Assembly: GCF_041956535.1 (NCBI RefSeq)
Contig: NW_027192205.1
Span: 434,085 to 498,084, forward strand
DNA length: 64,000 nucleotides
Source of the DNA: Calcarisporiella thermophila CBS 279.70
Lineage: Eukaryota > Fungi > Calcarisporiellomycota
Reading direction: 5' to 3'
Shown: in pieces, positions 15,280 to 34,854 of the stretch
Layout of the letters: each line of letters opens with the position of its first letter
Position numbering within the stretch: position 1 is the stretch's first letter
Translations under genes and position numbers: made by a program
Notes under the pieces: model-generated
Seen by the model: only the letters and a program-made list of their open reading frames with translations
What the model was told of the DNA's origin: nothing
The model's database searches: none

Positions 15280-18200
15280 CTATCGATCCCTTAGACACTT
15301 TTCAAGTTCTTTCGAGACAGCTCGCAGAGGAACTTCGGGAGTCTGGGCCCGCACGGTGTACTCTAGCACCTCCTTCTCCAACAGCAGATGCACCAGCACT
15401 AGCTTCTGCGCCTGTGGTCGAATTTTGCCCTGAGCTTGGATTGAGGCGGAGGCAATAATCTCGTTGCCAATGATTTCCACAATATGCCACCCGCCCTGTT
15501 CCAGGTTAGACGTCACCGAGCGTGTGTCCCTCTGTTCGCCTACCTCGCCCCGTGCTAGGGTGGCTTGGCGCTCGTGAGCAAACTCGACCCATAGCTTGCC
15601 AAATTCTTCAGTCACCATGGTATTCGGCGTAAAGGTCAGGAGAGGCGCTGTGAACGCGGGGGATCTCTGCATCGAAGGAGCAGGTGAGTTTAAGGTAGGG
15701 GAAGTGAGTGGAGTCGCTTCGCCAAGTTCGAGTGCTATTAGACTTGACATCATAGACTCCTAAAATATTGGATTTTCCCATAACAGGAGGATATGAGCAG
15801 TTGAAATCGAGAAAGACGTATTTTATACTGACCGCCGGATTTGCGGCTCCACCGCGATGGCTATCGGGGTAGTAAGTAGCTCCGAAGGGTGGCTGGCTGT
15901 AAGAGGAGCGGCGATCTTGTCGATACTTTGGCCCTGGACTAGATATATATCCACGCGATGCGAAACCACTACATTGAAGTGAAACCAACGGCATTAGCAC
16001 ATCGAAAAAGGTTAGGGCGTCACCACGACCCACCTCTCAGGTTGATGGTCATCCGCATCCTCATCTGCTGATCCCATGCCATAGATTCTAATCTGACCTT
16101 CTCTGCCCAGTCGAGAAGAAGGCAGGGTGGGGGTCTCGTATTGCGCAAACCGCAGCCCAGACCATGAATTCTCCCAGCTGCGCTCCCTCGTCCTCGAACT
16201 AGAATCCTCTCTGGCCTCCTCAGGCGTCTCATGCTTCTCCTCCTTCTCCGTGGGGTTCATTTTTTTCCCTCCATTTTTCAATCGCTCCGCACACTTTGAC
16301 ACGGCCTCTGTTACGCTTGATTTTATCCTCGCATTGGAAGATAAGGTTATGCACTGAGAAAGGCGCTGCAGCAGCTCAGCGTCAGTGTGATGTCTGGCCA
16401 GGGCGCCATATTCCCCCAAGAGCTATAAAAGTAGATGCCGAACTATGAGGCAAGGGGTGGAGCTCGGTTCATATTGTAGACACATTTTACCCATATGGCC
16501 GCATCCAAGATATCAAGGTCGATGGATTCGTCGGATACGTGTTCAAGGACAGGCAGGAGGTGGTCTATATCATAGGGGGATTGGGAATCGCTCTCCAGGT
16601 GCAGTTCTACACGCGACCACGAGAAAGATGCAAAAGCTACAGATGAGGCAGAGTAAAAAAGGGAAATTTCAAATGGTTTCTATACCTTCCACCACATCAC
16701 CCGCCACACTTTTAATAAACTCGGGATCACCTTGAAACTTGGTAAGCTCGAATATCCGGATATTAGTTCGAATGCACCACTTGCGATTGGGCGCATATGT
16801 AATAGAAAAAAAAAAGAGAGAGGGAAGGGTTAAGGAAATGGACTCGAGTAGCATAAAACGCCAGTGGGGTGAGGAAGTATGAATATATATAAAGGATATT
16901 TTTTAAAGATTTCCAAGATGGTCTTCAAGTGTCTCTCGGGCATCCTGCTTTCGACTGTGAGGGCTTCTAGGACGGCTATCGCGATCTTCTCCACATTTTC
17001 CTCCCGCACCCACCGTGGCAACAGGCCCATTGCCTTCCATCTTACCGACTCGTCCTCCGTGCTAAGACACTCACCCATTATCCGCACCAAATCCTCGCTT
17101 TTTTCATCGTCTCCTCTCGCCCACCACTCCGTATCCAAGTGCTCGAGACAAGCCAAGCCTATGTAGCGCAAATTGCTATTTCTCGAGTCGAGATACCGAA
17201 TGGCAGTCTCGAAAGGCCGGTGCTCTTCCACAAATCCCCGCCGCACTAGAGGATGTAGCACGGCGACGGTGCGCATACACTCGTACACCACCGCCAGGGC
17301 CGCATCCACGCCCTCCTCGGCACGCCGGAGAACGCTGAGCAAGACGGGGGCAACATCCTCTGATAGCCTCAAGTCATCTTGTATGAGGTGGGCGAGAATA
17401 CGGAGACATTTTATCTGCATCCACGGGGCAGGCTCTCCATGGTAGTAATAATACTCCGGAACCCTGCCCTCCACGATGGTAGACAACATTTGAAGGAGGA
17501 TATGGCAGGCATCGGGAAATTTCTCGGGCACTCTCTGTGAACGGGAATGGAGAAGCGTTAAACTTGAATCAGCCCCCCCCCCCCATTATCCGGTATTCTC
17601 ACTTTTAAGATATCGAAATAGAGATCCAGTGCCGAGGACACCACCCCCACGCTCTCACTCCTTAAAAGACGCTGCGCCACCAACTCCACGTTGTTGATCG
17701 CATCAGGAGCCATCTTGTACGCAATCCCTAAAACGCGGACCGATTTTTGGCGTACGCTCATAGAGCGGTGATGCAATTTCTTCTCCAAGTGGGGAAACAT
17801 GACGGGCACTAGGGCTGGATTCATGAGGTAGCAAAGAGCGTTGAGGGCGATACAGACCTCTGCATCCCTATCGCTCTCTATGTCCTATCCCAACCGAAAG
17901 AAAAGCGTAAAAAAATAGTCCCATTGCTGCAGCAACCTCATCGGCGAGCCTGGACTTACCCTTTGAAAAGTATTGACAAGCAACAAGCACAGCTCATTCT
18001 CGGGGTCCAACAACAGAGAGCAAGCTAGATATCCCACGCGTTTCTCGGCAAGGGTGCGGGCATTTTGTGTTAGTGTGACGGCGTGGATATACCCAAACGA
18101 CACATCATGGCCGAGGAAGTGGCAGAGCAGGAGACAAATTACATATTCGCGCTGTTTGGACTATTGGGATCAAATTAGCCATTACTACAAAATCTCTATC

Positions 18201-18574
18201 CTTGATCAATGGAGCTATGTATACTGTTGAAATGTGGGGTTTGGACAGCTTTTCACGAAGGGCACGAATCTCTCCCACAACCACCGTCCTCTAGTAGCAA
18301 AGAAAAAAAAACGAGATATTCAGCATAGCTTAAGACACACACCAGCCAGAGCATTCATGGTAGAGAGATAGCCGTGGTGGACATTAAAAACCTTAGAGTA
18401 TAAGATGGCCACGAAGGAGACTGAAGATCTGCGATCTACACGTCAAGAAAAAGAAAGAGATGGGTAGCATACCTCATCCAATCGCGGGTCCGTCAAATTG
18501 CGGATGAACTTGTGGTAGTGGTATCCCATCCCCGAGGTGATAAGCGAGGGATTGAAGAAATTGGCCAGAGACAT
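15280..18574 (-). CDS. AP4E1: AP-4 adaptor complex subunit epsilon (adaptin N-terminal + AP4E appendage), multi-exon, includes one AT-AC intron
   Basis: LGHDVSFGYIHAVTLTQ...EKRVGYLACSLLL, EYYYYHGEPAPWMQIKCLRIL, K-YAPNRKW, C-terminal TEEFGKLWVEF...WHIVEIIGNEIIASA typical of epsilon adaptin. Confidence 0.88.
16799..16899 (-). other. U12-type (minor spliceosome) AT-AC intron, 101 nt
   Basis: 5' splice site ATATCCTTT (16899-16891), branch site TTCCTTAAC (16837-16829), 3' end ...TCTATTAC. Removal joins IFK-K to YAPNRKW in frame. Confidence 0.92.
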
Positions 18575-33790: not shown

Positions 33791-34854
33791 ATGTCCACAC
33801 CGATTCTTCAACATTTTGAGGGTAGCCCATAGTGCTGATGCCGTGTTTTGATTCCGTTTCTGACCATGTTTGTTTCTCCCGCCCATTCTTTTAGATCCTG
33901 AGCCCTCAAGTCGCAAAAAATACCGCGCCCCCCGCAAGCCTACGGCCGTCACCGTCTACACGGTGAACCGTGAGTCCCGGCACCTACTGGTGTCCAATGT
34001 GGCTGCCCTCCAGCTCTCTTCCGAACTCATAGCTCTCTTCGCACAGTATGGCGACATTGAAGAGTGGGTGACATCATGTCCTTTTTCATTTCGTATAGAA
34101 ATTAGCTTGAAACCGTCGTGCTTCTTTTTCTTGGTATTACAGGTGGCAGAAGGTGGAGGACTATCCATGCGAGGAGTTCACGGAGGCCTTCTGGATCAAG
34201 TTTGTGTCCTTGTCTGCGGCGCGGCTGGCCAAGCGAAGACTGGACGACCGCTATTTCTTTAGCCGGCACCTTACGGTGAACTATGCACCCGAGTACGAGT
34301 CGGTGGAAGATGTGCGGGCGAAGCTGGAGGAGCGGCGAAAGGCCATTGCGGAAAGGACCACAAGGCGCACCGGCCAACGTGGGGGGCAAATGGGACAGGA
34401 GTCAGAGCCACGGGAAACAAGGTAGGATCAGTTTGTCAGCACTGGTTTATCTAGGGGGAATGGTATTCATTGGCATTTGCTTCATACTTTCTCTTTTTTT
34501 TTTTTTGCACCTTCTGCTTTTCCTTTGTCATGTGGGGGCGGCAGTCAACATCCTATGCCGGTGTCATCGGTAGCATGGTCACACGCTCACCATCCCACTT
34601 TCTCATACACCCCATTTCAAGAAACATGGGGGCCGGATGATTCAGAGGATCCCCTCGGGGCAACTACCCTCGCAATACGAGAGCAACTGCGCAGCTTCGG
34701 GAGCTCAGCCTCTGTAATGAGACCTGGTCTACCAGCACAAGCACCAGCACAAGCACTAACAACAGCAACAGCACCTCCTTCTACTCATCTATCTACGGGT
34801 CTACCTCCCTCTTCTTCCGCGCCACCGCAGTTAAGAAAGCGGCGAAGGATTTAG
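33791..34854 (+). CDS. RBM48: RNA-binding protein 48 (RRM; U12/minor spliceosome factor)
   Basis: AVTVYTVNRESRHLLVSNV...LFAQYGDIEE...DYPCEEFTEAFWIKF...AARLAKRRLDDRYFF...LTVNYAPEYESVEDVRAKLEERR, C-terminal KRRRI. Confidence 0.9.

Follow-up and report, generated by a model that had tools for sequence, protein, structure and literature searches.

The question raised by this locus is whether a fungal gene for the epsilon subunit of the AP-4 complex is interrupted by an intron that would be removed by the minor, U12-dependent spliceosome. The gene lies in a stretch of 64,000 nucleotides (nt) of Calcarisporiella thermophila DNA, referred to below as the window. Judged from its sequence, the segment 16899..16799 on the minus strand is very probably a U12-dependent AT-AC intron of the C. 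thermophila AP-4 epsilon gene. The gene, the intron and its flanking exons are laid out as follows, a slash marking a splice junction or split codon here and below:

15280..18574, minus strand: AP-4 complex epsilon subunit gene, coding sequence including the stop codon; ten exons and nine introns, from the exact mapping of the public protein P0001
16900..17534, minus strand: exon 5, 635 nt, closing on ...ILEIFKK, its final Lys codon divided aa/a; 100% identical to P0001 residues 218-428
16799..16899, minus strand: very probable U12-type AT-AC intron, 101 nt, phase 2, splitting the Lys codon aa/a
16891..16899, minus strand: 5' splice site ATATCCTTT, 9/9 against the U12-type consensus and complementary to the 5' end AAAAAGGGC of the U11 candidate
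16829..16837, minus strand: branch-point sequence TTCCTTAAC, 9/9 against TTCCTTRAY and complementary to GAGUAAGGA in the U12 candidate
16831 and 16830, minus strand: candidate branch adenosines within TTCCTTAAC
16830..16832, minus strand: in-frame TAA met by read-through translation if the intron is retained
16804..16829, minus strand: uninterrupted pyrimidine run of 26 nt that separates the branch motif from the 3' splice site
16799..16800, minus strand: terminal AC at the 3' end, in the context ...CTATTAC; no AC or AG comes earlier after the branch motif
16686..16798, minus strand: exon 6, 113 nt, encoding (K)YAPNRKWCIRTNIRIFELTKFQGDPEFIKSVAGDVVE and followed by an ordinary GT-AG intron (16685-16607)

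The identity of the gene follows from its domains. A HMMER scan with the upstream exon returned P0001, an uncharacterised C. thermophila protein of 839 amino acids (locus tag VTP21DRAFT_2781), whose exact spliced mapping onto the window requires eight GT-AG introns of 64-182 nt and one AT-AC intron; with all nine removed, the product is continuous over 839 residues. Translations of exons 3-5 matched the Pfam family Adaptin_N (PF01602), and the last exon matched the AP-4-specific appendage platform domain AP4E_app_platf (PF14807, 6.2e-13). This pairing of an Adaptin_N trunk with a C-terminal AP4E appendage platform identifies the protein as AP-4 epsilon (AP4E1), as a preliminary description of this DNA had proposed, and the named relatives of P0001 listed in the homologue search are vertebrate AP-4 epsilon-1 proteins. 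Homologue searches used either single exons or the public protein as query, rather than a joined model of our own. The same description had suspected a fungal host, which is now specified as strain CBS 279.70 (accession JAZGQU; PMC11393059), a species that NCBI taxonomy places in the phylum Calcarisporiellomycota, outside the Dikarya.

Read along the minus strand, the intron and its surroundings are arranged as ...ATCTTTAAAAA / ATATCCTTTATATATATTC...CCATTTCCTTAACCCTTCCCTCTCTCTTTTTTTTTTCTATTAC / ATATGCGCCCAATCGCAAGTGG..., with exon 6 beginning at 16798 and the upstream edge at 16900/16899 reading ...atctttaaaaa / ATATCCTTTATATAT.... The 5' splice site conforms to [A/G]TATCCTT directly at the exon boundary, and the terminal dinucleotides AT and AC form a compatible, unmixed pair of the U12 type. 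Since ATAT occurs at both intron ends, a shift of the boundary by as much as 4 nt would be compatible with the sequence, but canonical termini arise only at 16899/16799. On retention, the frame ...LKTILEIFKK would continue as YPLYIF... and ...EIFKKYPLYIFILPHPTGVLCYSSPFP to end at the TAA at 16832-16830. Excision of 16899..16799 instead rejoins the split Lys codon as K-YAPNRKWCIRTN, that is ...EIFKK-YAPNRKWCIRTNIRIF..., and P0001 reads ...EIFKKYAPNRKW... across the junction, the exact product of the AT-AC splice (...EIFKK/YAPNRKW...). The intron start, branch motif and AC end given in the preliminary description thus stand on the letters themselves, as do its read-through stop at 16830 and the K-YAP...W motif that it expected from excision.

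Within the window, the combination of these signals is confined to the site. RTATCCTT occurs eight times in the window (4.1 expected, a mild excess) and TTCCTTAAC twice (0.64 expected), and the two combine at one site only, 16899..16799. Genome-wide, the strict pair ATATCCTT-N20-120-TTCCTTAAC was found five times, compared to none in a reversed control. Of all the GT-AG, GC-AG and AT-AC pairs enumerated around the site that keep the frame and avoid a stop, only 16899/16799 gave a gap-free alignment to the nearly invariant Y-x-P-x3-W block ([KR]-[YF]-[AS]-P-x3-W) that AP-4 epsilon shows in animals, plants, protists and fungi. Elsewhere in the window, RTATCCTT is present at seven further places, which were considered as U12 introns and rejected, as they have no usable downstream branch motif.

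Comparison of the genomic loci of related genes showed that five species have, at exactly this position and in phase 2, an AT-AC intron carrying U12 signals. The closest homologues of the fungal gene come from Glomeromycota, Endogonales and Mortierella, with 35-37% identity over the exon. The five introns are:

Paraglomus brasilianum (L050): ATATCCTTTAAAC...ATCCTTGAC...CATAC, restoring K-FPLAPDW; branch to 3' end 23 nt
Gigaspora margarita (L049): ATATCCTCTT...TTCTTGAC...TTAAAC, restoring K-FLPSPEW; branch to 3' end 36 nt
Acaulospora colombiana (L055): ATATCCTTTC...TTCTTAAC...TTTACAC, restoring R-FYQSSEW; branch to 3' end 31 nt
Crotalus horridus, rattlesnake (L051): gctgaaaa/ATATCCTTTT...TTTCCTTAATGTCCCTGACAC/ATATGCTCCA (ATATGCT); branch to 3' end about 12-13 nt
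Branchiostoma lanceolatum, amphioxus (L067): gagAG/ATATCCTTCT...CTCCTTAACAATCACAC/GTTTGCC; branch to 3' end about 9-10 nt

The chordate AP4E1 introns share with that of Calcarisporiella the gene family, the codon (Lys or Arg before [YF]-A-P), phase 2, AT-AC termini, a ATATCCTT 5' splice site and a TCCTTAA branch motif, and in the rattlesnake even the exon edges, aaaa/.../ATATGC, are alike. They differ in being 700-800 nt long, with a spacing of 9-13 nt and no pyrimidine run, compared to 101 nt, 31-32 nt and a 26-nt run in Calcarisporiella. The Glomeromycota introns resemble it in position, phase, AT-AC termini and long spacing (23 nt in Paraglomus, 36 nt in Gigaspora and 31 nt in Acaulospora), although the signals of Gigaspora and Acaulospora are slightly degenerate (ATATCCTCT; TTCTTGAC and TTCTTAAC). 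At the protein level, a kangaroo-rat (Dipodomys) sequence, P0139, reads AEK-YPL, as read-through into ATATCCTT would produce. U12DB includes mouse Ap4e1 among the minor-intron genes, and the gene has been assayed by reverse-transcription PCR (PMC8848931).

The intron is absent, with coding sequence continuous at the position, from Jimgerdemannia flammicorona (L053) and the cryptophyte Baffinella (L068), and turmeric (L052) lacks the AT-AC intron at this site and has a GT intron eight codons downstream instead; the Mortierella locus (L054) has runs of N at the junction and is uninformative. Because an AT-AC intron stands at the same codon in chordate AP4E1 and Glomeromycota AP4E, the simplest reading of these alignments is that the intron goes back at least to the opisthokont ancestor, was lost here and there, and was not gained in the Calcarisporiella lineage. 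The non-opisthokont sample consists of two species, turmeric and the cryptophyte. The suggestion in the preliminary description that animal AP4E1 also has a minor intron, and that the position may be ancient, is thereby substantiated as far back as the opisthokont ancestor, by rattlesnake and amphioxus introns with the same codon and phase.

Components of a minor spliceosome are encoded in the genome. We searched the 28.2-megabase assembly with Rfam families for small nuclear RNAs (snRNAs), using gathering thresholds as cut-offs, a check that the preliminary description had suggested for U11, U12, U4atac and U6atac, and obtained exactly one full-length candidate for each, the four loci being at C6:999547, C1:926673, C11:412021 and C2:193832. 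The U11 and U6atac candidates lie above their cut-offs (53.1 bits against 39, and 47.6 bits against 33, respectively). In the aligned candidates, the U11 5' end AAAAAGGGC and the U12 box GAGUAAGGA are intact, and motifs resembling Sm sites, AAU(C/U)UUUGG, are found in U11, U12 and U4atac. The 5' end of the U4atac candidate is complementary to the central region of the U6atac candidate over approximately 18 base pairs and, because this complementarity is kept with changes from consensus on both sides, the two appear to be genuine partners. Among the protein factors, six-frame searches of the genome returned PDCD7 (U11/U12-59K; 33.9 bits, cut-off 27) and two matches to the CCDC84/CENATAC family (107 and 58 bits) at C1:1439509-1440876 (L057). 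In humans, CENATAC is a factor specific to AT-AN minor introns.

Several observations weigh against assigning the intron to the minor spliceosome, and we gather them here. From its branch motif to the 3' end the distance is 31-32 nt, and the 26-nt pure pyrimidine run at 16829-16804 separates the two, whereas U12 introns are described as having an optimum spacing of 11-13 nt and no distinct polypyrimidine tract (PMC3584512). The U12 and U4atac candidates score 44.4 and 42.9 bits, each below a cut-off of 53. Just 5' of its AGAGA box, the U6atac candidate (C2:193832-193964; L002:1501-1633) has GUCGA in place of the highly conserved AAGGA of the Rfam consensus (GAGUCGAGAGAUGG compared to GAAAGGAGAGAAGG); the box next to AGAGA pairs with positions +4 to +8 of U12-type 5' splice sites in humans. 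In its other features, including the pairing with the U4atac candidate, this U6atac gene looks genuine, and a search of the genome for a second, canonical copy returned the known locus only. Finally, zf-U11-48K (PF05253) and zf-SCNM1 (PF15803) had no six-frame match in the genome, a result that is uninformative on absence, the models being only 25-27 positions long.

With regard to spacing, the preliminary description had already noted a branch site about 30 nt from the 3' end, with a pyrimidine tract in between, as farther than typical, and the letters agree. Downstream of the branch motif, the sole adenosine ahead of the terminal AC is 16803, 4 nt from the end, and because there is no other, the branch could not sit closer and the spacing of 31-32 nt is forced. 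Absence of a polypyrimidine tract describes the U12 introns of animals and plants and is not a criterion for classifying introns. Among the strict-motif AT-AC candidates of the C. thermophila genome that are supported by open reading frames (ORFs), the spacing runs from about 11 to 39 nt with a median near 18, a distribution that is approximate, since an ORF-based choice of 3' site cannot separate alternatives 3n nt apart; many of these spacers are T-rich. The orthologous introns have long spacings in Glomeromycota (23-36 nt) and classic short ones in chordates (9-13 nt). A spacing of 31-32 nt is thus long by human standards, but falls inside the range of the fungus's own genome and of the Glomeromycota orthologues, and on this rough estimate it looks like a relaxed spacing rule of the lineage rather than a defect of the AP4E intron.

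The pyrimidine run and the long spacing, both reminiscent of U2-type 3' ends, are also what would lead one to suppose that a real AT-AC intron is excised by the major, U2-dependent spliceosome or with the assistance of its 3' factors; a mouse study reports the involvement of U2 components at some minor introns with weak branch sites (PMC8848931). Against this, ATATCCTTT and TTCCTTAAC in the fungal intron are perfect U12 consensus sequences. U2-type AT-AC introns have ATAAGT-like 5' splice sites, a further point against their kind of removal here. The snake and amphioxus orthologues bear the same signals at short spacings of 9-13 nt, candidates for all four minor snRNAs are present in the genome, and the other strict-motif U12 candidates likewise show spacings of 11-39 nt and T-rich spacers, pointing to a habit of the lineage and not to a switch of intron type. 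We therefore consider removal by the major spliceosome very improbable. It would be less probable still that a conventional GT-AG pair, for example donor 16955 with acceptor 16843, is used and the AT-AC signals are coincidental. In-frame, stop-free GT-AG combinations do exist near the site, and the Paraglomus annotation relies on such a substitute pair, but every GT-AG or GC-AG option in the C. thermophila gene drops at least 19 conserved residues (VESRMPERHLKTILEIFKK) and either inserts about 15 unrelated ones (SISLTLPSLFFFSIT) or loses the invariant Trp motif. The donors involved are poor (GTCGAA, GTCCTA), as is the acceptor (ctcgAG, without a pyrimidine tract), whereas the public model and the five orthologous AT-AC introns favour 16899/16799.

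The stop codon met on read-through could, taken by itself, indicate that there is no intron and that the gene is interrupted or truncated, as a pseudogene or through an assembly error, with translation ending at the TAA at 16832-16830. This we regard as extremely improbable: the downstream exons prolong the adaptin trunk as far as an AP4E appendage platform domain that is intact, removal of nine introns yields one continuous 839-residue product, and it would otherwise be an extraordinary coincidence for exact consensus splice signals to occur where animals have them too. The reading as a U12-dependent AT-AC intron has four supports, the logic of the sequence, the splicing of the public model, the minor-spliceosome components encoded in the genome and the deep conservation of the position, and they argue that the intron would be excised in vivo by the minor spliceosome. 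If the intron behaves as in the system that has been characterised, the U11/U12 small nuclear ribonucleoprotein dimer would recognise ATATCCTTT through the U11 5' end AAAAAGGGC, and U12 would pair through GAGUAAGGA with TTCCTTAAC, bulging A16831 or A16830, one of which would probably act as the branch point. The U4atac/U6atac.U5 particle would join next, the first AC downstream of the branch motif (16800-16799) would serve as the 3' splice site, and the exons would be joined inside the Lys codon (aa/a) to give ...EIFKK-YAPNRKW....

The intron also bears on annotation. The preliminary description had anticipated that gene finders would mis-annotate it, which is not the case for C. thermophila, where P0001 already uses the AT-AC junction, but holds for orthologues: in five of the six other AP4E annotations examined that have the intron (Paraglomus, Gigaspora, Acaulospora, Crotalus and Dipodomys), it is mishandled, either by read-through (K-Y-P-L/F), by a substitute GT-AG pair that drops the KF/YxPxxxW residues, or by exon skipping. 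In this respect the Calcarisporiella model, which splices the intron correctly, differs from those of the Glomeromycota.

Beyond this gene, the pattern ATATCCTT-N20-150-TCCTTRAC, representing the AT-AC type, was found 31 times in the whole genome compared to 10 in the control, and the GT-AG version, with GTATCCTT and TCCTTRAC, 14 times compared to 4. The excess over controls amounts to approximately 30 strict-motif U12 introns with an AT-AC to GT-AG ratio of about 2:1 (loci L005-L048). By these strict-motif counts, the U12 introns of Calcarisporiella are dominated by AT-AC, unlike those of most species, in which GT-AG is the majority subtype (PMC10639083). In other respects the fungus resembles the early-diverging fungi of the same survey, in which minor introns were recorded in Rhizophagus irregularis (205), Basidiobolus meristosporus (249), Rhizopus and Phycomyces (Larue & Roy 2023, PMC10639083): it lies outside the Dikarya, has candidates for the four minor snRNAs and motifs like those of animals and plants, and shares with animals a subset of positions. 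AP4E acts in vesicle transport, and genes of that class are enriched among those with minor introns in Rhizophagus (PMC10639083).

The strong CENATAC match is of interest given the AT-AC bias of the genome's U12 introns. Taken jointly, the AT-AC bias, a tolerance of or preference for long, pyrimidine-rich spacers (11-39 nt), a U6atac box that has lost three of the five AAGGA bases and the retention of a strong CENATAC would imply altered rules for handing off the 5' splice site and for choosing the 3' splice site, and on these grounds we raise, as a speculative and rather doubtful idea, that minor splicing may be modified in Calcarisporiella and perhaps in the Glomeromycota lineage too.

Some further observations were made alongside the searches for the machinery. 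The search for U6atac copies yielded as a near-match the 16-mer GAGCAAAGGTTAGCAC, present in three genome copies (C5:367768, C9:7256 and C14:745902; L064-L066), and no Rfam family matched within 350 nt around each of them. Near the U11 locus, a GA/CT-rich low-complexity stretch (L003:2094-2226) gave weak, sub-threshold matches to the plant microRNAs MIR408 and MIR2118, which are almost certainly a compositional artefact. Within the window, at approximately 33870-34425 on the plus strand, a pair of ORFs (...VYTVNRESRHLLVSNV... and ...EDYPCEEFTEAFWIKFVSLSAARLAKRRLDDRYFFSRHLTVNYAPEYESVEDVRAKLEERR...) appears, as judged by eye, to resemble RBM48, a factor of the minor spliceosome.

Knowledge of minor introns in fungi outside the Dikarya dates from 2006-2008 (PMC2396436), and a large-scale survey followed in 2023 (PMC10639083). 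In the searchable literature we did not find Calcarisporiella or Calcarisporiellomycota mentioned together with U12, and the available portion of the Larue & Roy supplement text lists neither Calcarisporiella nor AP4E1. The biology itself is established, minor introns being documented in non-Dikarya fungi and AP4E1 being a known minor-intron gene, and the C. thermophila AP4E intron is, as far as genomic comparison can tell, a well-supported fresh instance of a known phenomenon. It offers a clean case of a minor intron kept at one codon from fungi to chordates, lineages separated by roughly a billion years. The intron is also useful as a marker of annotation errors, because five of the six other AP4E annotations examined mis-model it. 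For the organism, the analysis indicates that C. thermophila, a thermophile from a fungal phylum that has received little study, has kept a minor spliceosome that looks functional, together with at least about 30 U12-type introns, and the oddities at the level of the lineage, namely the spacing, the AT-AC bias and the U6atac box, are more interesting leads than the intron itself.

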